Shown here piece by piece: positions 3,001 through 44,149 of a stretch of DNA of 64,000 bases. A model generated the notes under the pieces. That model was not told where the DNA came from, did not search any database, and was given only the letters and a program-made list of their open reading frames with translations. The stretch lies in assembly GCA_028826165.1 (NCBI GenBank), contig JAPDFW010000125.1, positions 124,001 to 188,000 on the forward strand, read 5' to 3'. Position 1 is the stretch's first letter. Every line of letters begins with the position of its first letter. Made by a program: the position numbers and the translations under genes. The DNA is from Anaeramoeba ignava BMAN (taxonomy: Eukaryota > Protista > Anaeramoebae).

Positions 3001-6000
3001 TTTAATTTTCATTTTAATTTTGATTTTAATTTTGATTTTGATTTTGATTTTAAAATGAATTTTGATTTTGATTTTGATTTTAATTTTAATTTTGATTTCA
3101 ATTTTAAATTTGATTTTAATTTTGATTTTCATTTTAAAATGAATTTTGATTTTAATTTTAATTTTCATTTTAAAATGAATTTGAATTTTGATTTTAATTT
3201 TGATTTTAATTTTGATTTTAATTTTAATTTTGATTTTAATTTTAATTTTGATTTTGATTTTAAAATGAATTTTGATTTTAATTTTAATTGAAATTAATTT
3301 TCATTCCTTACCATTAATCATTTTACTTATTTCTTGTTTAATCTTCTTTTTCCCAAGAAATTTCTTTAATTTCTTTTTATTTCCAAGTTTAATCAATTCA
3401 TGAACTTGATTTTTTTCTGCATTATTTTTCAAAAGAAGTGCAATATCCTGTCGATTTTTTTCTTGTGCAATTAAAAAAGGAGTTTTTCCATTATTATCCA
3501 TAATATTACGTTTAGCTCCAAATTTAATAAGCATTTCAACAATTTTGAAATGACCAGAATCACAAGCAAAATGTAAAGCTGTTCTTTGATTTTTTGAAAG
3601 TTCATCTACATTTACTTTTTGATCAATTAATTCTGCAAGCATATCTACATATCCTAATAATGCAACAAGATGTATTGGAAGTAATCCTTCTCGATTAAAT
3701 TGAAATCTTGCATTCACACTTTGAATTATTTGTTTAAATGCACTTAACCGTTTATTTTCAATTGCAATGTGAATAGCATAATTTTCATCTTTATCCTTCA
3801 TATCAACAAGCATTTTATCACTCATTATAAGATTGTATATTGATTTTGCTGAGTCTCCATATGCTGCCCAATGAAGAGCAGTCCTTAACAAAACAAAATT
3901 ATACAATTTAATATTCAATTCAAATAAAAATATTTAATTCAAATCAATTCAATTCAATTCAATTTAATTTAATTTAATATTCAATTCAATTCAATTCAAT
4001 TTAATTTAATATTCAATTCAATTAAAAATATTTAATTCAATTTAATATTTAATTCAATTTAATTTAATTCAATATTTAATTTAATATTCAATTCAAATAA
4101 AAATATTTAATTCAATTCAATTCAATTCAATATTCAATTCAATTCAATTCAATTCAATTCAATTCAATTCAATTCAATTCAATATTCAATATTCAATTCA
4201 ATTCAATTCAATTCAATTCAATTCAATATTCAATTCAATTCAATTCAATTCAATTCAATTCAATTCAATATTCAATTCAATTTAATATTCAATTCAATTT
4301 AATATTCAATTCAATATTCAATATTTAATATTTAATTCAATTTAATATTCAATTCAATATTCAATTCAATTCAGTATTCAATTCAATTCAATTCAATTCA
4401 GTATTCAATTCAATTTAATATTCAATATTTAATTTAATATTTAATTTAATTCAATTTAATATTCAATTCAATTCAATATTTAATATTCAATATTTAATTT
4501 AATATTTAATTTAATATTCAATTCAATTCAATTCAATTCAATTCAATTCAATTTAATTCAATTCAATATTTAATATTCAATATTTAATTTAATATTCAAT
4601 TTAATTCAATTTAATTTAATATTCAATTCAATTCAATTTAATATTCAATTTAATATTCAATTTAATTCAATATTCAATTCAATTCAATTTAATATTCAAT
4701 ATATTCAATATTCAATTCCAATATTCAATTTCAATATTCAATTCAATTTATTATTCAATTCAATTTCAATTCAATTCAATTATGTTTTTATTCAATATTT
4801 AATTTCAATATTCAATTCAATTTAATTCAATATTCAATTCAATATTTAACATTTAATATTCAATATTTAATATTCAATTTAATATTCAATTCAATATTCA
4901 ATTCAATTTAATATTTAATATTTAATATTCAATTCAATTCAATATTCAATATTTAATATTCTTTGAATTCAATATTTAATATTCAATTCAATTCAATTCA
5001 ATTCAATATTCAATTCAATTCAATTCAATTCAATTCGATTCAATATTTAAATTATTCAATTCAATTATTTAATATTTAATATTTAATTTTAATATTTTAA
5101 TTTAATATATTTAATTTAATATTCAATTCAATTCAATTCAATTCAATTCAATTTAATTCAATTCAATTCAATATTCAATTCAATTCAATTCAATTCAATT
5201 CAATTCAATTCAATTCAATTCAATTTAATTCAATTCAATTCAATTCAATATTCAATTTAATATTCAATTTAATTTAATATTCAATATTCAATTCAATATT
5301 CAATTTAATATTCAATTCAATATTCAATTCAATTCAATTTAATTTATTCAAATTTAATATTCAATTCAATTCAATATTCAATTCAATTCAATATTTAATA
5401 TTTAATATTTATTTAATATTTAATTCCAATATTTAATTTAATTTAATTTATTTAATATTCAATTCAATTCAATTCAATTCAATATTCAATTTAATATTCA
5501 ATTCAATTCAATATTTAATTCAATTCAATTTAATTCAATATTCAATTTAATATTCAATTTAATTTAATATTCAATTTAATTCAATTTAATATTCAATTTA
5601 ATTTAATATTCAATTCAATTCAATTTAATATTCAATTCAATTTAATATTCAATTTAATATTCAATATTCAATTCAATTCAATTTAATTCAATTTAATATT
5701 CAATTCAATTTAATTTAATATTCAATTTAATATTTAATTTAATTCAATTTAATATTCAATTTAATTCAATATTTAATATTTAATATTTAATTTCAAATAA
5801 ATGAATTGTTTACCATCCATTTTCATCGACAATTCGTGGATTTGCTTGCTTTGAAATTAATAAACTAACTAAATTTGATTTATTAAGTGAACAAGAGTAT
5901 TGAAGTGGGGTCAATCCTGTTTCTTTATCTTTAATTTCTAAATTCATCCCCTTTTCAATTAGTAATTTTGCAAGTTGATAATCATCATTTTTAATTGCCA

Positions 6001-6305: not shown

Positions 6306-9300
6306 ATGTTTTCTGTTCAAAATTTTTTCCTCTTTTTTTTCATTTTATCTTTTTTTCATTTAAACATTGGTTTTTGTTCAAACAGTTTTACATTCACTGG
6401 AAATTATATTGATGTTATTTTAGAAGAAGTTTATCCGGCAACGGTTGTTGTTCAAAATGGAAAAATATCTCAAATTACTCGTTTAACTCAAAATGATTCG
6501 AATTTTTCTTACGATTATATTGCTCCTGGTTATGTTGATTCTCATATTCATGTTGAATCTTCTCTTCTTCCTCCTGCTGAATTTGCAAGATTAGCTGTTC
6601 AACATGGTGTTGTTAGTACTGTTTCAGATCCTCATGAAATTGGTATTTAAATTTATAAATAATTTTATAATTAATTTTATAATTAATTTTATAATTAATT
6701 TTATAATTAATTTTATAATTAATTTTATAATTAATTTTATAATTAATTTTATAATTAATTTTATAAATAATTTTATATTTAATTTTATAAATAATTTTAT
6801 AAATAATTTTATAATTAATTTTATAAATAATTTTATAAATAATTTTATAAATAATTTTATAATTAATTTTATATTTAATTTTATAAATAATTTTATAAAT
6901 AATTTTATAAATAATTTTATAAATAATTTTATATTTAATTTTATAAATAATTTTATAAATAATTTTATAATTAATTTTATATTTAATTTTATAAATAATT
7001 TTATAAATAATTTTATAAATAATTTTATAAATAATTTTATAAATAATTTTATAATTAATTTAATAAATAATTTTATAAATAATTTTATAAATAATTTTAT
7101 AATTAATTTTATAAATAATTTTATATATAATTTTATATTTAATTTTTATAAATAATTTTATAATTAATTTTATAAATAATTTTATAAATAATTTTATAAA
7201 TAATTTTATAATTAATTTTATATATAATTTTATAAATAATTTTATAAATAATTTTATAAATAATTTTATAATTAATTTTTATATATAATTTTATAAATAA
7301 TTTTATAAATAATTTTATAAATAATTTTATAAATAATTTTATAAATAATTTAATAAATAATTTTATAAATAATTTAATAAATAATTTTATAAATAATTTT
7401 ATATTTAATTTTATAATTAATTTTATAAATAATTTTATAAATAATTTTATAAATAATTATATAATTAATTTTATAAATAATTTTATAAATAATTTTATAA
7501 ATAATTTTATAAATAATTTTATAAATAATTTTATAAATAATTTTATAAATAATTTTATATTTAATTTTATAATTAATTTTATAAATAATTTTATAAATAA
7601 TTTTATAAATAATTTTATAAATAATTTTATATTTAATTTTATATTTAATTTTATAAATAATTTTATAAATAATTTTTATAAATAATTTTATATTTAATTT
7701 AATAAATAATTTTATATTTAATTTTATAAATAATTTTATTAATAATTTTATAAATAATTTTATATTTAATTTAATAAATAATTTTATAAATAATTTTATA
7801 AATAATTTTATATTTAATTTTATAAATAATTTTATATTTAATTTTATAAATAATTTTATAAATAATTTTATAAATAATTTTATATTTAATTTTATAAATA
7901 ATTTTATATTTAATTTTATATATAATTTTATAAATAATTTTTATAAATAATTTTATAAATAATTTTATATTTAATTTTTATATTTAATTTTATAAATAAT
8001 TTTATAAATAATTTTATTATTAATTTTATAAATAATTTTATAAATAATTTTATAAATAATTTTATAAATAATTTTATAAATAATTTTATATTTAATTTTT
8101 ATAAATAATTTTATATTTAATTTTATAAATAATTTTTATAAATAATTTTATAAATAATTTTATAAATAATTTTATAAATAATTTTATAAATAATTTTATA
8201 ATTAATTTTATAAATAATTTTATAAATAATTTTATAAATAATTTTATAAATAATTTTATAATTAATTTTATAAATAATTTTATAAATAATTTTATAAATA
8301 ATTTTATATTTAATTTTTATAAATAATTTAATAAATAATTTTATAAATAATTTTATATTTAATTTTATAAATAATTTTATAATTAATTTTATAAATAATT
8401 TAATATTTAATTTTATATTTAATTTTATATTTAATTTTTATTAATAATTTTATAAATAATTATATATTTAATTTTATAAATAATTTTATATTTAATTTTA
8501 TAAATAATTTTATAAATAATTTTATAAATAATTTTATAAATAATTTTTATATATAATTTTATATTTAATTTTATAAATAATTTTATAAATAATTTTATAA
8601 ATAATTTTATATTTAATTTTATAAATAATTTTATATTTAATTTAATAAATAATTTTATAAATAATTTTATTAATAATTTTATAATTAATTTTATAAATAA
8701 TTTTATATTTAATTTTATAAATAATTTTATATTTAATTTTATAAATAATTTTATATTTAATTTTTATAAATAATTTTATATATAATTTTATATTTAATTT
8801 TATAAATAATTTTATAAATAATTTTATAAATAATTTTATAAATAATTTTATAAATAATTTTATATATAATTTTATATTTAAATTTATAATTAATTTTATA
8901 AATAATTTTATAAATAATTTTATAAATAATTTTATAAATAATTTTATAAATAATTTTATAAATAATTTTATAAATAATTTTATAAATAATTTTATAAATA
9001 ATTTTATAAATAATTTTATATTTAATTTTATAAATAATTTAAGCAAATGTTCTTGGAATTCCTGGAGTTGAATTTATGATTAATAGTTCTAATCGTGTTC
9101 TTTTTTATTTTGATTTTGGTGCTTCTCCTTGTGTTCCTGCATCAAGTTTTGAAACTTCTGGTGCAACTTTATCTACTGAAGATATTGATACTTTATTTCA
9201 AAATTATTCTTTAACTTATCTTGTAAAAGAATATATTTTTCTTTTAAATTATTTTTAAATTATAAATCGAATGTATTTAAGATTATTTTGTTATTATATA

Positions 9301-22004: not shown

Positions 22005-25000
22005 TTAATTTGTAAAAACCAAATTCTTTTTCTTTTTTAAATGAGATGAACGAATTTTCTTAATTTGTTTTTTTGGAACTTCTTTGATTTCTTGTTTTTG
22101 TTCAATTTCTTGATTTTCTTGATTAATTCTTTTCTTAGATTTGTTTTTTTTCTTGTTTTGTTTTTTTGGAATTTCTTTGATTTCTTGTTTAATTTGTTTT
22201 TCAATTTCATCTTCAATTTCATTTTCATTTTCATTTTCATTTTCATTTTCATTTTCATTTTCATTTTCATTTTCATCTTCATCTTCATTTTCATTTTCAT
22301 CTTCATTTTCATCTTCATTTTCATTTTCATTTTCATATTCATTTTCATTTTCATCTTCATTTTCATATTCATTTTGATTTTCATTTTTTTGATTAGTTTC
22401 TAAATCAGAATCAAATTCTTCTGGATTACTTTCTTCACTTAAATCATCAAAATTCTCATTTTCTTCAATTTCTACTAATTCATTTTCATCTTTATATTTT
22501 TGAATTAATTCTTGAATATTTATTTGTTCATTTGAATCATCAAATTTAATATTCTTTTTGTCTAAATTTTTTATTGAATTGTAAATAGGAAGTCCAAGTG
22601 TTTTTGGTGTTTGTATTTGAATTGATTTAATGTTATCCCAATTTCCTGGTATTAATTGAATAATTTTATCTGTTGATTCCATTATATTTTCTACGATGAA
22701 GTTAAAAGGAAAATCTGAATATGCAATTTTTACTCCACTTTTAATATCAAAAAAAATTTAAATTTTTTAATTATAAATTTAATTTTAATTTTAAATTTAA
22801 ATTTAAATTTCAATATTAATTTTAATATTAATTTTGATTTTAATTTTAATATTAATTTTAATTTTAATATTAATTTTAATATTAAATATTAATTTTAATT
22901 TTAATTTTAATTTTAATTATAATTTTAATTTTAATTTTAATTTCATAAATTAATTTTAATTTGAATTTTAATTTTAATATTGATTTTAATATTAATTTTA
23001 ATTTTAATATTAATATTAATTTTAATTTTAATATTAATTTTAATTTTAATATTAATTTTAATTTTAATTTTAATTTTGATTTTAATTTTAATATTAATTT
23101 GAATTTTAATTTTAATTTTAATTTTAATTTTAATTTTAATTTTAATTTTAATTTTAATTTTACATGCATGCTCCTATTGGAATAAATAAATGAACAGAAT
23201 CTCTTGCATTTTCTATATTCTTCTTAATATCTTCTTGGTTTTTTGATTCCAAATCTATTAAAATTGGATGCTTTTTTGCTCGGAAGAAAGTTTTTCCAAT
23301 TAAACCAGGAAGTAAAGATGTAATTTTAGAATCAGCAAAAAACAAATCATAAGTTTTAAGAAGTCTTCTTCTCTGTTCAAATTGATGATATCTTTTCTTC
23401 AACTTATTGATTTGAATAATTTTGACAATTTGAGGAATATTTGCTTGTTTTATTTTTGTCTTAATTATTTTATGAGGATCGTTTCGAATAAAAAAACATA
23501 TTGAAACATTTGTGTATAATGAATGTGGAACTGGACTATTATTTTATAAATTATTTTATTAATTATTTTATTAATTATTTTATAAATTATTTTATTAATT
23601 ATTTTATAAATTATTTTATTAATTATTTTATAAATTATTTTATTAATTATTTTATAAATTATTTTATTAATTATTTTATAAATTATTTTATTAATTATTT
23701 TATAAATTATTTTATTAATTATTTTATAAATTATTTTATTAATTATTTTATTAATTATTTTATTAATTATTTTATTAATTATTTTATTAATTATTTTATT
23801 AATTATTTTATTAATTATTTTATTAATTATTTTATTAATTATTTTATAAATTATTTTATTAATTATTTTTATAAATTATTTTATTAATTATTTTATTAAT
23901 TATTTTATTAATTATTTTTATTAATTATTTTATAAATTATTTTATTAATTATTTTATTAATTATTTTATAAATTATTTTATTAATTATTTTATAAATTAT
24001 TTTATTAATTATTTTATTAATTATTTTATAAATTATTTTATAAATTATTTTATTAATTATTTTTATTAATTATTTTATAAATTATTTTATTAATTATTTT
24101 ATAAATTATTTTATTAATTAATTATTAATTATTTTTATTAATTATTTTATAAATTATTTTATTAATTATTTTATTAATTAATTTATTAATTATTTTATTA
24201 ATTATTTTATTAATTATTTTATTTATTATTTTATTTTATTATTTTTTTTTATTTATTTTATTAATTTTTTTTATTATTTATTTTATATAAATTATTTTAT
24301 AAATTATTTTTTAATTATTTTTTATTAATTATTTTATAAATTATTTTTATTTTTATTTAATTTTTTATTAATTATTTTATTAATTATTTTATTATTTATT
24401 TTATAAATTATTTTATAAATTATTTTATTAATTATTTTTATTAATTATTTTATTAATTATTTTTATTATTTATTTTATAAATTATTTTATTAATTATTTT
24501 TATTAATTATTTTATTAATTATTTTTTATTAATTATTTTATTAATTATTTTATTAATTATTTTATTTATTATTTTATTAATTATTTTTATTAATTTATTT
24601 TATTTTTTATTTTTTATTAAATTTTATTAATTATTTTATTAATTATTTTATTAATTATTTTATTAATTATTTTATAAATTATTTTTTTATTAATTATTTT
24701 ATTAATTATTTTTATTAATTATTTTTTATTATTTATTTTATAAATTATTTTATAAATTATTTTATTAATTATTTTTATTAATTATTTTATTAATTATTTT
24801 ATTATTTATTTTATAAATTATTTTTATTAATTATTTTATTAATTATTTTATTAATTATTTTATTAATTATTTTATTAATTATTTTATTAATTATTTTTTA
24901 TTTATTATTTTATTAATTATTTTATTAATTATTTTATTTATTATTTTATTAATTATTTTATTAATTATTTTATTAATTATTTTATTATTTTAATTTATTA

Positions 25001-25664
25001 ATTATTTTATTAATTATTTTATTTAATTAATTTATTAATTATTATATAAATTATTTTATTAATTATTATATTAATTATTTTTATAAATTATTTTATTAAT
25101 TATTTTATTAATTATTTTATTAATTATTTTTATTAATTATTTTATAAATTATTTTATTAATTATTTTATAAAATGATTTTATTAATTATTTTATTAATTA
25201 TTTTTATTAATTATTTTATAAATTATTTTATTAATTATTTTAATTATTTTATTAATTATTTTTATAAATTATTTTATTAATTATTTTATTAATTATTTTA
25301 TTAATTATTTTATTAATTATTTTATAAATTATTTTATTAATTATTTTATTAATTATTTTATTAATTATTTTATTAATTATTTTATTAATTAATTTATTAA
25401 TTATTTTATTTATTTATTTTATTATTTATTTTATTAATTATTTTATTTATTTATTTTATTATTTATTTTATTAATTATTTTATTAATTTACACTATTTTG
25501 AATTTGTTATCTTTTATATTGGAAATTTTATTAAGATTAAAAAGTAAAATAATTGGTTCAGGATTTTCTGGAATTAAAGACTTTTTTCCTTTGTTTGTTT
25601 TTTTAGGAGTAATTTTAGTTAATTCTTTAATAGCATTTGCAACTTGTTTTTTATTAAATTCCAT
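22005..25664 (-). CDS. RSL1D1: Ribosomal L1 domain-containing protein (RSL1D1/Cic1/Utp30 family); introns 23536..25491, 22738..23163
   Basis: VPVPHSL, RRLLKTYDLFFADSKI..LLPGLIGKTFF..KKHP, IVENI, WDNIKSIQIQT..TLGLPIY, followed by an acidic/basic tail. Confidence 0.88.
23536..25491. repeat. Intronic 12-mer satellite (ATTAATTATTTT)n
   Basis: About 1.95 kb; RSL1D1 intron 1. Confidence 0.9.
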
Positions 25665-29396: not shown

Positions 29397-31061
29397 TCAT
29401 TTTTCATTTTGATTTTCATTTTGATTTTGATTTTCATTTTGATTTTGATTTTCATTTTGATTTTCATTTTGATTTTGATTTTGATTTTCATTTTGATTTT
29501 CATTTTCATTTTCATTTTCATTTTGATTTTCATTTTGATTTTGATTTTCATTTTCATTTTCATTTTCATTTTGATTTTGATTTTGATTTTCATTTTGATT
29601 TTCATTTTCATTTTGATTTTCAATTTGATTTTCATTTTGATTTTCAATTTGAATTTCATTTTCATTTTCAAATTGAATTTCATTTTCAAATTCATTTTCA
29701 TTTTCATTTTCATTTTCATTTTCATTTTCATCTTCATATTCATTTTCATTTTCTTCAATCATTTCATATTCAAAACTTTCTACTTCATCTGAACTCCAAC
29801 TAATTTCAACATTCTTCGTTATAACTTCAGAATCATTCAAAAAAGGGAATTGACCATTATAATCTAAACCAACTGAATCTGGAACTTTAGAAGAATTTTC
29901 ATTAAAATTATCAGAAAATTGAAAACCAATAAATTTTGAATCAGAATTTTCAAAATTGACTATTTGATCTGAAACCCAATCAAGTTCAACTTTTTTTGTT
30001 CCAAATCCAGAATCATCAAAAAAAGGAAATTGACCATCATAATCCAAATCAATTGAATTATCGATATCATTTTGTGTTTGAGAAATTTGAGGATTTGAAT
30101 CAGAAACTTTAAAACTTGTTTCAAACCATTTCTGTACATCTTCGTTCTTTACTTGTTCTGTTGTTTCAAGTTCTCCACTTAAATCACTCCATTCATCATT
30201 ATCTGATTCTTCTAAATTTTGAAATTGTGAACTTGCGAAAATATCTTGTAATCCATAAAATATAATATTATCATTTGGATTGAAAAAATGAGCATGACCT
30301 TCAATAATAATAGAATTTAAATCATTTGTAATTTGATCAGGAAATCCATAAAGATCATATTCGAAAGCATTTTTTTGATTTTCATTTTCAAATTGATTTT
30401 CATTTTCAAATTGAATTTTAAATTGATTTTCATTTTCATTTTCATTTTCATTTTCAAATTGAATTTCATTTTCAAATTGAATTTTAAATTGATTTTCATT
30501 TTCATTTTCATTTTCATTTTCAAATTGATTTTCAAATTGATTTTCATTTTCAAATTGAATTTCATTTTCAAATTGAATTTCATTTTCAAATTGATTTTTA
30601 AATTGATTTTGATTTTCAAATTGATTTTGATTTTCATTGCTTTCTCCATAAACCAAATTACAAATAATTCTTTTTTCACTTAATGCCTCATTCCCAATAT
30701 TTAATGAAGAATTAAATGTTTTAATTCCTAAAAAATTTGTTAATTCATAAATGTTTGATAAATTTAATCTAAAAAGATTGATTTGTTGAAAATTTGAAAA
30801 TGATTGAAATGATTGATTATGAAATTCAATTGAATTTGAAGTTGTTCCAATTAAAGAATATTGAAAAAAAGTTTGATTCAAAAGTGATTCTCTTTCTAAA
30901 AAAAGATTTGCAATTAAATTTTTTTTTTGTGATTGAATTTTTGGAAATTCATTGAAAATAGAAGAAATTTGTTTTAAAGATAAATAATGTTGTTCAACAT
31001 TAATAAATTTTTTTGGAGAAATTTTTGAACTACGTTTAATTAAAATAAAAGGGAAATTCAT
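29397..31061 (-). CDS. Unknown acidic protein with EN/QN and ENEIQF low-complexity tracts; may extend to about 29102 across a 1-nt indel
   Basis: 554-aa ORF with non-repetitive N-terminal and middle parts and an upstream TCATTT motif. No family recognised. Confidence 0.55.
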   Translation of the reverse strand: MNFPFILIKRSSKISPKKFINVEQHYLSLKQISSIFNEFPKIQSQKKNLIANLFLERESLLNQTFFQYSLIGTTSNSIEFHNQSFQSFSNFQQINLFRLNLSNIYELTNFLGIKTFNSSLNIGNEALSEKRIICNLVYGESNENQNQFENQNQFKNQFENEIQFENEIQFENENQFENQFENENENENENQFKIQFENEIQFENENENENENQFKIQFENENQFENENQKNAFEYDLYGFPDQITNDLNSIIIEGHAHFFNPNDNIIFYGLQDIFASSQFQNLEESDNDEWSDLSGELETTEQVKNEDVQKWFETSFKVSDSNPQISQTQNDIDNSIDLDYDGQFPFFDDSGFGTKKVELDWVSDQIVNFENSDSKFIGFQFSDNFNENSSKVPDSVGLDYNGQFPFLNDSEVITKNVEISWSSDEVESFEYEMIEENENEYEDENENENENENENEFENEIQFENENEIQIENQNENQIENQNENENQNENQNQNQNENENENENQNQNENQNENENENENQNENQNQNQNENQNENQNQNENQNQNENQNEK

Positions 31062-33285: not shown

Positions 33286-33645
33286 AATCTATTTATTATT
33301 TTTTTTATTATTATCTATTTTCAAAAAAAAAAAAAATGAAAAAAATGAAAAAAATGATTTTCGAAATTAAATTTTTTTTTTGTTTAATTTTTTATTTTAA
33401 TTTTGATTTTGGATTTGAAAAAATATTTTTAGTTCTAAAATTGGTTTTAAAAAAAAAAGAAAAGAAAAAATCAAAACATAAACCAAAAGAACTAAAAAAA
33501 AAAAGAAAATGAATTTGAAATCAAATCCAAAAGAAAAAAAAATCAATTTGAAAAATTTGATGAAAGAAAAATCAATTTGAAAAATTTGATCAAAAAGAAG
33601 AAGAAATGAGAAGAAAAAAGAAAAAAAGTTTGAGAATTGTTTTCC

Positions 33646-34107
33646 TTATTTTTCCTTATTGCAGTTGCAATCTTTGCAATTACAAATTCCATCTTTGCAT
33701 TGACAATCTTTGCAATTACAATTCTCACATTTGCAATCTTTGGATTGACAATCTTTGCATTTACAGATTCCATCTTTACATTGACAATCTTTGCAAGTGC
33801 AATTCTCACATTTGCAATCTTTGGATTGACAATCTTTGCAATTACAGATTCCATCTTTGCATTGACAATCTTTACAAGTACAGTTATCACATTTGCAATC
33901 TTTGGATTGACAATCTTTGCATTTACAGATTCCATCTTTGCATTGACAATCTTTGCAATTACAATTCTCACATTTGCAATCTTTGTTGTTACATTTCTTT
34001 TTCTCAACTTTTTCTCTTGATTTGCATTCACAAGTACAAATTCCATCTTTCATTGTGCATTTGCAATCTTTGCAAGTACAATTTTCACATTTGCAAGTTT
34101 TTTCCAT
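33646..34107 (-). CDS. Modular metallothionein-like protein, copy 1
   Basis: 153 aa with 47 Cys by manual count, CxC motifs, no aromatic residues or His; five 9-Cys modules with a 27-aa period. Confidence 0.85.
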   Translation of the reverse strand: MEKTCKCENCTCKDCKCTMKDGICTCECKSREKVEKKKCNNKDCKCENCNCKDCQCKDGICKCKDCQSKDCKCDNCTCKDCQCKDGICNCKDCQSKDCKCENCTCKDCQCKDGICKCKDCQSKDCKCENCNCKDCQCKDGICNCKDCNCNKEK

Positions 34108-34417
34108 TTTAAAATTGTTTTTTATAAAAAAAGAATATTAAAAAAAATATAAAAAAGAAAAATGAAATGATTTTAAATGAAATAATTCTCTTTTATATTC
34201 ATTTTTTTCTTATTAAATTTTTGACGTTTTGCTTTTTCACCCTTTGATCAATTTAAGGGGGATTTAATTCACTTTTCATTTTTTAATTTATTTTTTTAAT
34301 TTAAAAATTAAATTTTAAAAGATGATTTGGCATTTACTTTTAGATTTAAAATTTATTTCAATTTTATTTTAAATTATATATTATATTTTAAAAATTTTGA
34401 TCAAATTTTTTATTATT

Positions 34418-34646
34418 AAATTTTCTTTTTATGATCTTATTTAAAAATATATATCTTCTAAATCCCCCTTTTCTAATCTAAAAGTAAAATAATATTTTAT
34501 TTATTAAATTATTAATTATTTATTAATTATTTATTTAATTTAAATTTATTTCAAATTATTAATTTTTTATTGTTAAATTTTCTTTTTATGATCTTATTTA
34601 AAAATATAAATGATTTAAATCCCCCTTTTATAATCTAAAAGTAAAA
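34418..34646. promoter_or_regulatory. Two copies of a 72-bp element upstream of metallothionein copy 1
   Basis: AAATTTTCTTTTTATGATCTTATTTAAAAATATA..TAAATCCCCCTTTT.TAATCTAAAAGTAAAA at 34418..34489 and 34575..34646. Regulatory role is inferred. Confidence 0.55.
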
Positions 34647-35159
34647 TATATTTTATTTCAATTTATTAATTATTTCTTAATCTAATTTTATTTTAAATTA
34701 TTAATTATTTTTTTATTGTTAAATTTTCAATTAAATTCAATATTTTAAATTTGGATTTTATTGTTAATTTTAATTTAGTTTTGTTTTTTAAAAAAAGAAA
34801 TCAAATTGATTAAAAAAATTTGATGAAAGAAAGGAAATAATTTCTGAAATAAATTTTTTTTTTGTTTAATTTTTTATTTTAATTTTGATTTTGGATTTGA
34901 AAAAATATTTTTAGTTCTAAAATTGGTTTTAAAAAAAAAAAGAAAAGAAAAAATCAAAACATAAACCAAAAGAACTAAAAAAAAAAAGAAATGAATTTGA
35001 AATCAAATCCAAAAGAAAAAAAATCAATTTGAAAAATTTGATGAAAGAAAAAATCAATTTGAAAAATTTGATGAAAGAAAAAAAATCAATTTGAAAAATT
35101 TGATCAAAAAGAAGAAGAAATGAGAAGAAAAAAGAAAAAAAGTTTGAGAATTGTTTTCC

Positions 35160-35621
35160 TTATTTTTCCTTATTGCAGTTGCAATCTTTGCAATTACAAA
35201 TTCCATCTTTGCATTGACAATCTTTGCAATTACAATTCTCACATTTGCAATCTTTGGATTGGCAATCTTTGCATTTACAGATTCCATCTTTACATTGGCA
35301 ATCTTTGCAAGTACAGTTATCACATTTGCAATCTTTGGATTGGCAATCTTTGCATTTACAGATTCCATCTTTGCATTGACAATCTTTGCAAGTACAGTTA
35401 TCACATTTGCAATCTTTGGATTGGCAATCTTTGCAAGTACAAATTCCATCTTTACATTGACAATCTTTGCAAGTACAATTCTCACATTTGCAATCTTTGT
35501 TGTTACATTTCTTTTTCTCAACTTTTTCTCCTGATTTGCATTCACAAATACAAATTCCATCTTTCATTGTGCATTTGCAATCTTTGCAAGTACAATTTTC
35601 ACATTTGCAAGTTTTTTCCAT
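35160..35621 (-). CDS. Modular metallothionein-like protein, copy 2
   Basis: Near-identical tandem paralog 1514 bp away, with duplicated flanks. Confidence 0.85.
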   Translation of the reverse strand: MEKTCKCENCTCKDCKCTMKDGICICECKSGEKVEKKKCNNKDCKCENCTCKDCQCKDGICTCKDCQSKDCKCDNCTCKDCQCKDGICKCKDCQSKDCKCDNCTCKDCQCKDGICKCKDCQSKDCKCENCNCKDCQCKDGICNCKDCNCNKEK

Positions 35622-35934
35622 TTTAAAATTGTTTTTATAAAAAAAAAGAATATTAAAAAAAATATAAAAAAGAAAAATGAAATGATTTTAAATGAAATAA
35701 TTCTCTTTTATATTCATTTTTTCTTATTAAATTTTTGACGTTTTGCTTTTTCACCCTTTGATCAATTTAAGGGGGATTTAATTCACTTTTCATTTTTTAA
35801 TTTATTTTTTTAATTTAAAAATTAAATTTTAAAAGATGATTTGGCATTTACTTTTAGATTTAAAATTTATTATTTCAAAATTATTTCAAATTATATATTA
35901 TATTTTAAAAATTTTGATCAAATTATTTATTGTT

Positions 35935-36685
35935 AAATTTTCTTTTTATGATCTTATTTAAAAATATATATCTTCTAAATCCCCCTTTTTTAATCTAAAA
36001 GTAAAATTTATTTTATTTAAATTTATTAATTATTAATTATTTCTAATTTTATTTAAATTTATTTCAAATTATTAATTATTTCTAATTTAATTTAATTTTA
36101 TTTCAAATTATTTATTTCTTATTTTAAATTTTCTTTTTATGATCTTATTTAAAAATATAAATATTCTAAATCCCCCCTTTTCTAATCTAAAAAGTAAAAA
36201 TATATTTTATTTATTAAATTTATTTCAAATTATTAATTATTTATTATTTTAATTTTATTAAATTTATTTCAAATTATTAATTTTTATTGTTAAATTTCCT
36301 TTTTATGATCTCATTTAAAAATATAAATCTTCTAAATCCCCCTTTTCTAATCTAAAAGTAAAATAATATTTTATTTATTAAATTATTAATTATTTATTAA
36401 TTTAATTTTATTTCAAATTATTTATTAATTTAATTTTATTTCAAATTATTTATTTCTTATTTTAAATTTTCTTTTTATGATCTTATTTAAAAATATAAAT
36501 GATTTAAATCCCCCTTTTATAATCTAAAAGTAAAATATATTTAATTTAAATTTAATTATTAATTATTTCTAATTTTATTTAAATTTATTTCAAATTATTA
36601 ATTATTTCTTGTTAAATTTCCTTTTTATGATCTTATTTAAAAATATAAATGATTTAAATCCCCCTTTTCTAATCTAAAAGTAAAA
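35935..36685. promoter_or_regulatory. Five copies of the same 72-bp element upstream of metallothionein copy 2
   Basis: Copies at about 35935, 36126, 36292, 36464 and 36614, separated by variable AT-rich spacers. Regulatory role is inferred. Confidence 0.55.
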
Positions 36686-36779
36686 TTTAATTTATTTATT
36701 AAATTTATTTCAAATTATTAATTATTTCTTAATCTAATTTTATTTAAATTTATTTCAAATTATTTATTAATTTCTTATT

Positions 36780-39700
36780 TTAATTTTTATAATTTTGATT
36801 CAATAATTGACTAATAAATTCCCAAATAACAATCGATGAACCAATATGAGGGCTTAAAGAAGGAAAAAAACCAAAATGAGGAATTTCCAAACAAATATCC
36901 AAAAGCTCAATAATATTTTGAGGAACAATTCCATTCTCATCTCCAATTAGCAAAACGCATTTTTTTGGAAATTCAAAGTCTGATAAAAATTTACTATCAT
37001 TTGATTCAGTAAATCCAATTATAACAAAACCTTCTTCTTTTTTCTGTTTAAAAAAAGTTGGAATCTCTTCAATTTTCACTTGCAAAAATGGTAACCATTT
37101 TTCTGCTCCAACACTTATTTTTTGGAAATGATTTTCTTTGATTATATTGATATTATTTACTGTTAACATTTTTGCGTTGAAAATTTCACAAGTTCGAGTT
37201 AATCCACCCAAATTAGGAATTTTTGAAAGAAGTGAACCACAAACTATAAGATTATTTTTCTTTCGAGACTCGTAATTCTTTTTTCTTTCTTCATTTCCAA
37301 TAGAATTTAAATCAATATTTTTATCATTAGAAATTTGTTCCCATGGAGATATTTTTTGTTGGAAAATATTTTTTGAATTTTCATCTTGAATCACTTCATT
37401 GTTCTTTTTCTTGAAATGATTTTCGTTTTCGTTTTGATTTTGATTTTCTTTTTTATCTTGATTTTGATCATCTTTATGTTTATACAAAATACTTTCTTCT
37501 TCAATTTGTTTTGATACTTCACTTTCTTTTCCAAAAAAAATATCTGAAACTTGTTGAAAAATTTCTAGAGGAATATAAATATACGATTTCTCAAAATCAA
37601 CACTTAAATTCTTCATTCCTTCATCAAATAATTCACAAACAGAATTTTCCAAATAAAATTTTTTGTTTGAACTTTTTGTACTTCTTCCAAAATCATCATC
37701 ATATTTTGTTTTATCAAGTCTTTCTTTAAGTTTTTCTAACCCATAACTTTGGAAATGAATTTCTTTAAACAATTCTTGAATTGAAAATCGAGCAAGATTT
37801 CTAGTTTTGGTGTTTTTGGCAGCTAATGAAACAATTAAAAAAGCAATTAATTTATCCAGAAATTCTTTTGGCTTCTCTTTCTTGATTTTCTGATAAACAT
37901 GAAACACAATGAACACTGAAGATAATCCAAATTCGCGGATTTCGAGATTAATTTGTTGAAAAAAAGGATCCCAAAAATGTTGCTCTGTAATAAAGTCATG
38001 GGAATGAAGTGTAAATAAAGAAACACCCAAAATATCAACCAACTTTCTTATAATGGAAATATTAGATTCTTTGAAAATTCTCCAAAATTGAGAGATGCTA
38101 TCTTTTTTCATATTGGGACTTGTGTATTCAATAACCAAATTTAACAACTGAAGAACACGAATTTTATTGCGATTTTTCAGATCATCCATTTTGACTCTTT
38201 TCTTTTTGCTAATAGGGCCAATTTGATCAAATGCAAGAAATAATCTTGAACATATTGAATTGATGAATATTTGAGATGAAGTATTTGATTTGACTAGTTT
38301 GCATCTTTGCAACAAAAATACAGAAACACAAGCAAATGAATATTCGTTATTTGTTGTTTCTACAAGAAAGCGGATCTTGTCGTTGTAATTGGAATCCATT
38401 TTTTCTTTTCGTGAAGCTAATTTATCCATTGCTTTAAATCCATTTCTTTGCTTCTTTTCTGGAAGCTTTGGAACAAGAATTATCTGGATAATCTCATCGA
38501 TATATTTCAAACTAATTTCATCGTTGTTGACTTGAATAAGCGCATTCAAAAAGCTTGCGGAAACAGAGTTCAATCTGCCGCTTCGTGTTTGTGATTTTGA
38601 TATTGCATCTTTAAAATACTGTTTTATAAAAGATTCCATTTCTGGGATTAAAAAATATTTCGGTTGAAATAAAAAAAGTGGATAAATATTCAGCATTTTC
38701 AGTTCTTCGCTTTTTTTCATTCCAAAATCCAGAATAGATGTCATGACTGAAATTGTTTGCATTTTTTCAGATGGATCATCTTCCAAATGATCAATTTGTT
38801 GGGATAATGCTTTTGAAAATCCTCTCATTAATGAATAAAAGCTTTCTTTTTCTGTGATCGTATCCAATATTTCTGCGAATTCGTTCACAATTCTTTTGGT
38901 TTGTGCATATGAAATTTCTTTTTCGTAACAATCCATCATTTCAATCAAAATTTCACTTTTCAATTTCATAATTTGATTGTAAAAATGTGGTCCGTTTGAT
39001 TCCAATAAATCTCCAAATTTTGTTTCGATTAAAATTTCGAAAATTTCAGAAAAGAAATCCTTTCCTGAAAAATTAAGAAGAGAAGCAAGATTGTCAGAAT
39101 TTTGAAACAAAGAATGAAAAACAAAAACAAATTCAGCTGAAGAAACTGTGTTTTTTTTAGAAGAGTTGATAATTTTTTCAATTAATGTTTGTGAGAATTG
39201 AGAAAATAATTGTTGGTGATTTTCTTGATTGAATGATAGATTTTTTGCTAAATAAATTTTGATTTGGAAAATAAATGAGGAAAGAATTTCGCATTTCATG
39301 ATCGATTCTTGTTGATTATTTGATTCAAAAATTTCGTTGAAATATTCTTTAATAAGCTCAAATATTTTGGATAAATTTTCAAACAAGAAGAAATTTAATG
39401 CTTTATTTGTGTCAAAAGAAGATATAATCAGGCCAAGAAGATGAAAAGCTTTAAGAATATTTGCATTAAAGTTTTGATTTTGTTCATTTTGTTTGGGATT
39501 GAATAATATTTGTTGAATTTGACTGAGAAGGGAATTGATGAAATGAGGATCATGATTATCATCTATAAAATGGATCATTTGAGAAATTTTGTGAATCTTT
39601 GGTTTTTGATCTTGTAATGGATATTCAAAAGAGAAGAATTGGTAAATTTGTTGAGAGATTGTGTAAATTAACCAGGAATACTGGTTATTTTCATTTAAAA

Positions 39701-41621: not shown

Positions 41622-44149
41622 ATGCAATTTTTTACACAACTTTCAATAGAAAAAGGTAAAACAAGTTTTGAATTAGAAAAAGAAGAATATCAAATTTTAA
41701 CACAAAAAGATGTATCAATTCACAATGGAAAAGAAAAGAAGCCAAAATTAAAAGGAGTGATTTATTTAACATCAAAAAGATTAGCAATTATAGATTATTC
41801 AAAAAGAAAAGGATTTTCAACATTTTTATCAATAGTTAAAAAAACAAATCTTGAAAAAAGTACTTTTTCTCATTCAAAAGTTATTATTAATTTTGGTGAA
41901 GATAAATTTGTTACTTTCAGTTTTAAATCAAATGCTACTAAATTTGCTGAAAAATTAGTTGAAACTTTAAGTAATAAAACTTGGGTTCCAAAAATAGTTA
42001 AAGAGGAGAAAGAAGTTACTTCAAAAGATGTAACTCCAAAATTTGGAATTGGTAATTAAAATTTATTTAGAAATTAAAATGGAAATTTATTTAAAAATTT
42101 ATTTAGAAATCTATTTAAAAATTTATTTATAAATTTATTTATAAATTTATTTAGAAATTTATTTAGAAATTTATTTAGAAATTTATTTAAATATTTATTT
42201 AAAAATTTATTTAAAAATTTATTTAAAAATTTATTTAAAAATTTATTTGAATATTTATTTAGAAATTTATTTAAAAATTTATTTAGAAATTTATTTAGAA
42301 ATTTATTTAAAAATTTATTTAAAAATTTATTTAAATATTTATTTAGAAATTTATTTAGAAATTTATTTAGAAATTTATTTAGAAATCTATTTAAAAATTT
42401 ATTTAAATATTTATTTAGAAATTTATTTAAAAATTTATTTAAAAATTTATTTATAAATTTATTTAGAAATTTATTTAAAAATTTATTTAAAAATTTATTT
42501 AGAAATTTATTTAGAAATTTATTTAGAAATTTATTTAAATATTTATTTAGAAATTTATTTAGAAATTTATTTTAAATATTTATTTAAAAATTTATTTAAA
42601 AATTTATTTAAAAATTTATTTGGAAATTTATTTAAATATTTATTTGGAAATTGATTTAAAAATTTATTTGGAAATTGATTTAAAAATTTAAATGGAAATT
42701 TATTTGGAAATTTATTTAAAAATTTATTAAGAAATTTATTTAAAAATTTATTTAGAAATTTAAAATGGAAATTTATTTAGAAATTTATTTAGAAATTTAT
42801 TTAAATATTTATTTAAAAATTTATTTGGAAATTTATTTAGAAATTTATTTAGAAATTTATTTAGAAATTTATTTAGAAATTAAAATGGAAATTTATTTAG
42901 AAATTTATTTAAATATTTATTTGGAAATTTATTTAAAAATTTATTTAAAAATTTATTTAGAAATCTATTTAAAAATTTATTTATAAATTTATTTAGAAAT
43001 TTATTTAGAAATTTATTTAGAAATTACAAAATGGAAATTTATTTAGAAATTTATTTAGAAATTTATTTTGGAAATTTATTTAGAAATTTATTTAGAAATT
43101 TATTTAGAAATTTATTTAAAAATTTATTTAGAAATTTATTTAAAAATTTATTTAGAAATTTATTTAAAAATTTATTTAGAAATTTATTTAGAAATTTATT
43201 TAAAAATTTATTTAGAAATTTATTTAGAAATTTATTTAGAAATTTATTTAGAAATTTATTTAGAAATTTATTTAGAAATTTATTTAAAAATTTATTTAAA
43301 AATTTATTTGAATATTTAAAATTAGAATTCCTTTTACAAAGAGAAAATCAAGAAAGAGATTCAGAAAAAAAATTATTAACACAAGCATTTACAGACTTAG
43401 ATGCATTAATGAAAAATGCACAAAAAATGGTAAATATAGCTGAAAAATTTGCATATGCATTACATAAAGGGGAAACAGATGGAGGAAAACAAGAAACAGA
43501 TGAATTCAACTCAATTCTAATTGAAATTGGAATGGTTGATCCAGTCACAAAAGAAACATCAGGAGATATTTATTACGATGAATTATCAAGACAAGTCGCT
43601 TCTTTTCTTGAAAAAGTACTCCCAAAAACTGGAGGAATGATTTCACTTGCTGATGCTTATTGTCTATTCAATAGAGCTCGAGGAACTGAATTAATTTCCC
43701 CAGATGATTTACTTAAAGCTTGTCAATTATTCCAAAAACTCGGCGCTTCAATGGATTTGAGAAAGTTTGATAGTGGTGTTATTGTGATTCAAAGTAAATC
43801 TAATAATGATGAAGCAAATTGTAAAACAATTATCCACTTGATCCAAAAAAATGGTCCAATTTCTCCTTTTGAACTGGCAAAAAAACTTAAAATTTCCATT
43901 AATTTGGCAAAAGAACAATTGCTTAATGCTGAATCAAATCTTTTTCTTTGTCGTGATGAAACTATTGAAGGTCTTTATTTTTATGAGAATTTCTTTCTTA
44001 ATGAAAATGTTGATAATTTAGATCAGAAAAATTTATCAATAAATGAAAACATTCCAAAAGAGAAAAAAGAAACTTCAAAAAAAGAAACTTCAAAAAAAGA
44101 AACTTTTGTTACTATTAATGGAGAAGATGATGAATGGCAATTTGTTTAA
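41622..44149 (+). CDS. VPS36: ESCRT-II subunit Vps36; intron 42052..43325
   Basis: GLUE domain exon (GVIYLTSKRL) and C-terminal AFTDLDALMKNAQKMV, DPVTKE, GGMISLADAYCLFNRARGTELISPDD, LCRDETIEGLYFYEN. Confidence 0.93.
42052..43325. repeat. Intronic 12-mer satellite (ATTTATTTAGAA/ATTTATTTAAAA)n
   Basis: Direct inspection. Confidence 0.9.

Follow-up and report, generated by a model that had tools for sequence, protein, structure and literature searches.

Does the repeated sequence upstream of two metallothionein-like genes of the protist Anaeramoeba ignava BMAN serve as a multimerised promoter element, or is it one more tandem array in a genome where arrays of this size are common? The question concerns positions 34108-36779 of a stretch of 64,000 nucleotides (GenBank assembly GCA_028826165.1, contig JAPDFW010000125.1, positions 124,001 to 188,000 of the forward strand; G000:C115:124001-188000), which we call the window. 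The assembly comprises 42.8 Mb in 147 contigs, and the genome-wide counts given below cover all 42.8 Mb. Each of the two genes, here MT-A and MT-B, is preceded by an array whose units contain a conserved core of 77 nucleotides (nt), with two of the seven copies upstream of MT-A and five upstream of MT-B. Two short blocks of the core, the C5 block (TAAATCCCCCTT) and the AGT block (AATCTAAAAGTAA), recur singly and inverted between the array and each gene. The explanation that we favour, with about even confidence and on the strength of these sequence patterns, is that they act as paired cis-elements of the promoter, and that the array formation usual in this genome multiplied them. The genes and arrays are as follows.

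33646..34107, minus strand: MT-A coding sequence, 153 aa, 30.7% Cys, no aromatics, no Pfam match
35160..35621, minus strand: MT-B coding sequence, 153 aa, 446/462 nt identical to MT-A
34416..34740, plus strand: array A, units A1 34416-34572 and A2 34573-34740
35933..36790, plus strand: array B, units B1 35933-36123, B2 36124-36289, B3 36290-36461, B4 36462-36611 and B5 36612-36790

The blocks and where they occur

The units are 150-191 bp long and consist of the 77-column core and an AT-rich, low-complexity spacer full of insertions and deletions (indels), with a unit consensus of 9-10% G+C. The first-pass annotation of this DNA had described a conserved 72-bp unit present in two and five copies. 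The conserved core and the copy numbers are confirmed, with seven copies of the TTTTTATGATCT block, two in array A and five in array B (starts 34426, 34583, 35943, 36134, 36300, 36472 and 36622), but a head-to-tail array of 72-bp repeats is not what the alignment gives. The C5 block has nine matches at one mismatch or fewer, compared with 0.40 expected from shuffles, and the AGT block is present at the MT locus in eight exact copies. The core is conserved above the spacer (10/77 against 27/70 variable columns, Fisher P = 5 × 10-4; pairwise identity 94.6% against 85.5%), in a contrast that is exaggerated by slippage and alignment ambiguity in the spacer.

Between the arrays and the genes lie the following features, with promoter positions counted from the ATG on the gene strand.

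34159..34197, minus strand: putative MT-A core promoter, TATAAA at -90 and TTTCATTTT at -60 (MT-B equivalents 35674-35712)
34222-34227 and 34244-34251, unstranded: TGACGT and the TTGATCAA palindrome (MT-B equivalents 35736 and 35758); on the gene strand ACGTCA at -120 and TTGATCAA at -144, with array units from about -310
34255..34266, minus strand: single inverted C5 block (AAGGGGGATTTA on the plus strand), -159 from the MT-A ATG (MT-B equivalent 35769-35780)
34334..34346, minus strand: single inverted AGT block (TTACTTTTAGATT on the plus strand), -239 from the MT-A ATG (MT-B equivalent 35848-35860)
34396..34405, unstranded: TTTGATCAAA palindrome, -298 (MT-B equivalent 35913-35922)

The inverted single blocks near each ATG and the TGACGT sites are thus where the first-pass annotation had placed them (34255/35769, 34334/35848 and 34222/35736); the TTTGATCAAA palindrome was correctly located at 34396, and its second site is at 35913 rather than 35933. 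The proximal C5 and AGT blocks are exact over 12-14 nt, and they are inverted and swapped in order relative to the units. Start to start they are 79 bp apart, compared with 16 bp in the units, and their flanks match the unit at background level only. We reject a simple inverted duplication as their origin, because the order is permuted and the intervening sequence, which is complex, is not homologous to the unit.

In the genome as a whole, the block pair with a gap of 4-12 nt has six exact occurrences, all of them at the MT locus, where unit B2 carries a one-indel variant of it. Eight of the 10 exact C5 copies are at this locus, the other two lying one within a coding sequence and one at the apparent start of a coding region. 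For the AGT block the count is 18 exact copies, again with eight at the MT locus; the remaining 10 all lack a C4/G4 run within 300 bp, and several of them are inside open reading frames (ORFs). When relaxed 7-mer pairs are sought in the array or the proximal arrangement, only the MT locus exceeds the control count, and in a BLAST search with the whole unit the core half matches the seven units only and the spacer half has more than 270 matches. That the motif is found nowhere else, as had been claimed for the window, therefore holds for the paired blocks both in the remainder of the window and in the genome.

At one mismatch, the C5 block has 167 matches in the genome compared with 105 for the reversed control. 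The excess comes mostly from the MT locus and an unrelated array on contig C65, and the contexts of 20 one-mismatch matches show no extended likeness to the core. The genome scan that had been proposed for the blocks yields no wider set beyond the MT locus, and we reject a regulon, since every other exact site either is coding or stands without its partner block, and the one-mismatch excess has the two sources just named.

The duplicated cassette and its genes

The two genes belong to a tandem duplication of about 1.5 kb, which a self-comparison alignment delimits as follows.

33343..34726, unstranded: copy A, with 3' flank, gene, proximal promoter and first array units; aligns to 34826-36297
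34826..36297, unstranded: copy B

The duplication is recent. The copies are identical at 253/253 positions in the 3' flanks, 301/307 in the proximal promoters and 446/462 in the coding sequences, and we read the two MT promoters as one sequence that was very recently copied or homogenised. The coding sequences of the copies differ at 16/462 positions, more than the non-coding flanks with 0/253 and 6/307, which may come from exchange among internal 81-bp modules of the gene. The array units differ more. Their core diverges by 5-7% between unit types, compared with 0-2% for the flanks of the gene duplicates, and the closest relationships cross between the arrays: A2 equals B4 in the core, and A1 is nearest to B1, then to B2 and B3. 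This greater divergence, together with the cross-array pairing, suggests that the units arose before the gene was duplicated and were later reshuffled by unequal exchange, with the blocks kept.

MT-A and MT-B resemble metallothioneins in being small, with about 30% Cys in CxC/CxxC arrangements (47 Cys in 153 aa, 30.7%), no aromatic residue and no signal peptide; they have no His, are rich in Lys, Asp and Asn, begin with MEKTCKC and have an internal period of 81 bp. A Pfam search of the two proteins gave no family match, so the metallothionein label refers to composition only and metal binding is putative. With the MT protein as query, a word-indexed protein search returned just two bacterial Cys-rich relatives (P0001 and P0002), and an exhaustive search of representative proteins returned low-complexity noise and one further protein, P0010. 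P0001 and P0002 have hydrophobic, signal-peptide-like N-termini and a CKCENCTCKDC-type motif, and are 55-59% identical to the query over about 40% of its length; the P0002 gene is on a bacterial-looking contig, beside a Metal_resist (PF13801) gene and a gene for an ECF (extracytoplasmic function) sigma factor. The likeness could be due to convergent low-complexity Cys repeats or to an old transfer. In the literature we found no paper connecting Anaeramoeba with metallothionein.

A third, diverged MT-like gene or exon is present on contig C66, as an ORF of 39 aa at about 138175-138355 (L019 1564-1680, minus strand; L061 about 4176-4355); some 300 bp upstream of it stands a decayed tandem copy. 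The first 34 or so residues of P0010, a 791-aa model, match this exon, which a GT splice site joins to an unrelated protein. Just downstream of the ORF there is an AT-rich array of 6.6 copies of a 142-bp unit (L061 3109-4044). In common with MT-A and MT-B, the C66 gene has TTTCATTTT, at -39, and the TTGATCAA palindrome, at -87. The former stands in sense orientation within 200 nt upstream of 7 of the 17 long ORFs of the window, mostly at -20 to -60, and we propose that it may be an initiator-like element; the MT transcripts are predicted to begin some 55 nt before the ATG. The latter occurs three times per 1.5-kb MT cassette, compared with a background of 0.124 per kb, which gives a weak hint that it is a candidate element common to all MT-like genes.

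33586, 34244, 34397, 35100, 35758 and 35914, unstranded: TTGATCAA in the window, two upstream and one in the 3' flank of each cassette

Upstream of MT-B, on the same strand, is an ORF of 1499 aa that contains a SpoU methylase domain and has its stop codon at 36780. Unit B5 (36612-36790) reaches this stop codon, and therefore the 3' untranslated region of the SpoU-like gene probably lies within array B. Coding and satellite sequence overlap in this genome, as is seen in a 554-aa ORF (29397-31061, minus strand) with long (E/Q)N-repeat tracts made of hexamer and 18-mer microsatellites. The window has about 20% G+C, with spacers as low as 4-10%, in a genome reported to be 80.65% A+T (PMC11550330). 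The regions upstream of the MT genes had been called the longest intergenic regions of a window where most gaps are under 300 bp; this does not hold, as the window has many microsatellite-filled spacers of 1-2.4 kb (for example 6648-9040, 23538-25488, 3904-5784 and 42059-43318).

Weighing the explanations

A cassette of 1.5 kb, with 3' flank, metallothionein-like gene and promoter, was tandemly duplicated very recently. Upstream of the gene is an array of 150-191-bp units, in each of which a complex 77-nt core is joined to an AT spacer altered by slippage. If the blocks are promoter elements, one or two sequence-specific factors would bind the C5 and AGT blocks, and growth of the array would have multiplied these two candidate sites, with the difference between two and five units arising from the duplication breakpoint and from unequal crossing-over between units. 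We infer protein binding; a metal or stress response of the MT promoters would be a further step, taken from the identity of the genes only, and different expression levels of MT-A and MT-B set by copy number are speculative. An orientation-independent metal-response element had been proposed here, and what stands of this proposal is that the blocks are real, beyond chance expectation, private to the MT locus and present in both orientations with differing spacing and order. A stronger version, which we regard as unlikely, would have the blocks bind a lineage-specific stress or metal factor that serves the MT locus only, the array-forming tendency being co-opted and unequal crossing-over giving the dosage of two against five.

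Several observations weigh against a promoter function. A scan of both upstream regions (34108-34825 and 35622-36779) with known consensus sequences found that the metal-response element (MRE), Ace1, Mac1, AP-1/MTCM1, the full cyclic AMP response element (CRE), GTAC, the zinc-responsive element (ZRE) and the heat-shock element (HSE) are absent from both. The diverged C66 gene has neither the C5 block nor the AGT block upstream, and the confinement of the block pair to the MT locus means that there is no regulon. Since the two MT promoters come from a single recent duplication, finding TGACGT, the palindromes and the inverted blocks in each of them is no independent evidence, and the promoters count as effectively one instance without independent replication. 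Neither the protein searches nor a metagenome scan for the block pair, which gave zero matches, found an orthologue from another species, and footprinting has nothing to compare. Complex sequence resists slippage, and that alone could give the apparent conservation of the core, within which block and inter-block columns do not differ significantly (3/43 against 7/34 variable, P = 0.10).

These points bring forward the rival that we take most seriously, to which we give a clear though less than even chance: a neutral passenger satellite that grew by unequal crossing-over from the upstream flank and was copied with the gene, without a regulatory role. The core would then only look conserved since complex sequence does not slip, and the inverted blocks would be remnants of an old rearrangement. 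Beyond the non-significant block contrast and the recency of the duplication, this is favoured by the mosaic relationships of the units, as unequal exchange predicts, by the more than 270 genomic matches of the spacer half, and by the frequency of similar arrays. Tandem Repeats Finder, run on about 193 kb in a sample biased by the choice of loci through motif matches, gave arrays of similar period and non-coding nature at six to eight other places, or about one per 25 kb of this biased sample (units of 118-180 bp in L016, L041, L044, L045, L061, L075 and possibly L070). A further, unrelated intergenic array of 19 copies of 173 bp lies on C65 (107880-111093; L060 3880-7093) and was reached via a chance one-mismatch match. 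The AT-rich background of its unit is broken by a few complex patches, one of which, TAAATCTCCCTT, matches the C5 block at 11/12 positions by chance. The MT array fits this class of non-coding arrays with units of about 120-190 bp and G+C of about 10% or less in intergenic spacers. Because arrays of similar size are common in the genome, its architecture needs no special explanation, nor does it need a special function. What a neutral satellite accounts for poorly is the proximal promoter, where two separate blocks are preserved exactly over 12-14 nt, in reverse orientation and exchanged order, and the complex sequence that separates them has no homology to the unit. In eight control arrays no array-wide block reappears inverted in the flank, and the difference in substitutions between core and spacer (P = 5 × 10-4) also speaks against it.

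Two other explanations are less probable. The units might set the phase of nucleosomes, or might separate neighbouring same-strand genes as a terminator or insulator, rather than bind a metal activator. Their length of 150-191 bp is roughly that of a nucleosome, arrays of this class are found genome-wide, array B abuts the stop of the upstream same-strand ORF and array A separates the MT-A promoter from the 3' flank of MT-B; a role of this kind would leave unexplained both the recurrence of single blocks in the proximal promoter and the locus-private core, and we consider it improbable. The core is discrete and repeated, as would be expected of an array of small RNA genes or of a mobile element, either a satellite family or one like a miniature inverted-repeat transposable element (MITE), but we give this very little credence. 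A structured non-coding RNA array is rejected: the units have no Rfam match at E<=1 and no tRNA, and on both strands they fold no more stably than shuffles (z from -0.66 to +0.73). Scattering through the genome like a MITE or dispersed satellite, which had been named as grounds for giving up the promoter interpretation, is likewise rejected, since the core is unique to the MT locus and has no terminal inverted repeats, and the dispersed part is generic AT spacer only.

Anaeramoebae are a deep-branching anaerobic lineage living with sulfate-reducing symbionts, and to our knowledge nothing is known of their transcriptional control. A locus-private promoter module beside the MT pair would offer a starting point, as its two blocks are short enough to be made as oligonucleotides, and near-identical paralogues that differ mainly in element copy number amount to a natural dosage experiment. 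On the stronger version given above, with a lineage-specific stress or metal factor, the blocks would give Anaeramoebae their first defined cis-regulatory module. If the array is neutral, it would be a clean example of a satellite-forming habit that mimics a multimerised enhancer, and a caution for the other arrays of this genome.

Comparison with known systems

One comparison is with the near-nucleosome-length arrays of the same genome, which resemble the MT array in their 118-180-bp units, very low G+C, intergenic position near gene ends and complex patches. The MT array stands apart from them in having a core confined to its own locus and blocks that turn up again, singly and inverted, in the neighbouring promoter. 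Among promoter repeats, Vinces et al. 2009 reportedly described unstable tandem repeats in yeast promoters whose copy number alters expression; these are said to be mostly short and AT-rich and to work through nucleosome exclusion. The MT array is like them in that a change in copy number could make alleles or paralogues differ in expression, and unlike them in its long units with specific complex blocks.

In the upstream activating sequence of the yeast metallothionein gene CUP1 there are sites for Ace1/Cup2, and the CUP1 cassette is tandemly amplified. The likeness is looser here: a metallothionein gene and its promoter are amplified as a tandem cassette, with several candidate sites upstream, but there are only two cassette copies and no Ace1-type consensus precedes MT-A or MT-B, the pattern HTHNNGCTGD of Ace1/Amt1 sites having no match in either upstream region. 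A genome search for the copper-fist domain (PF00649) also gave no match, which is weak evidence because the control genomes were likewise silent. In animals, multimerised and orientation-independent MREs bound by MTF-1 lie upstream of metallothionein genes. The MT array shares with these, again more loosely, the multimerised upstream elements in both orientations, and differs from them in the absence of TGCRCNC, which occurs on neither strand of either upstream region, as had been stated of the blocks. The only piece of a known consensus is the AGGGG pentamer of the yeast stress response element (STRE) inside the C5 block, a mere lead. A MADS/MEF2-like reading of the AGT block is unsupported, with no SRF-TF domain match in the genome, as in the control genomes.

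A close parallel is the MTCM1 motif in the MTT1, MTT3 and MTT5 promoters of Tetrahymena thermophila (Diaz et al. 2007, PMC1808422), which later work pursued in connection with AP-1 bZIP factors (PMC6205968). Apart from metallothionein promoters, MTCM1 is found at only four places in the genome. It was multiplied by tandem duplication, as 54-bp repeats within a 416-bp tandem repeat, to 2, 6 and 13 copies in the paralogues; it is common to diverged paralogues and to a second species, and induction was measured in Tetrahymena (PMC1808422). The MT array differs in sequence, as TGANTCA is absent from both upstream regions and the half-CRE TGACGT and the TTGATCAA palindromes are present instead, and in units of 150-191 bp compared with 54 bp. 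Its sole replicate is a duplicate of 98-100% identity, and the diverged paralogue is without blocks. We compare the two as systems that may work alike, and not as members of one family, because the MT array matches no defining motif of the MTCM1, CUP1 or MRE systems. The element had been thought undescribed; this stands in so far as it matches no known metal-response consensus, but the logic proposed for it has a precedent. Like MTCM1, the MT blocks are nearly private to metallothionein promoters, occur in both orientations, differ in copy number between paralogues, were multiplied by tandem duplication and are better kept than the repeat around them, which makes Tetrahymena MTCM1 a close published match.

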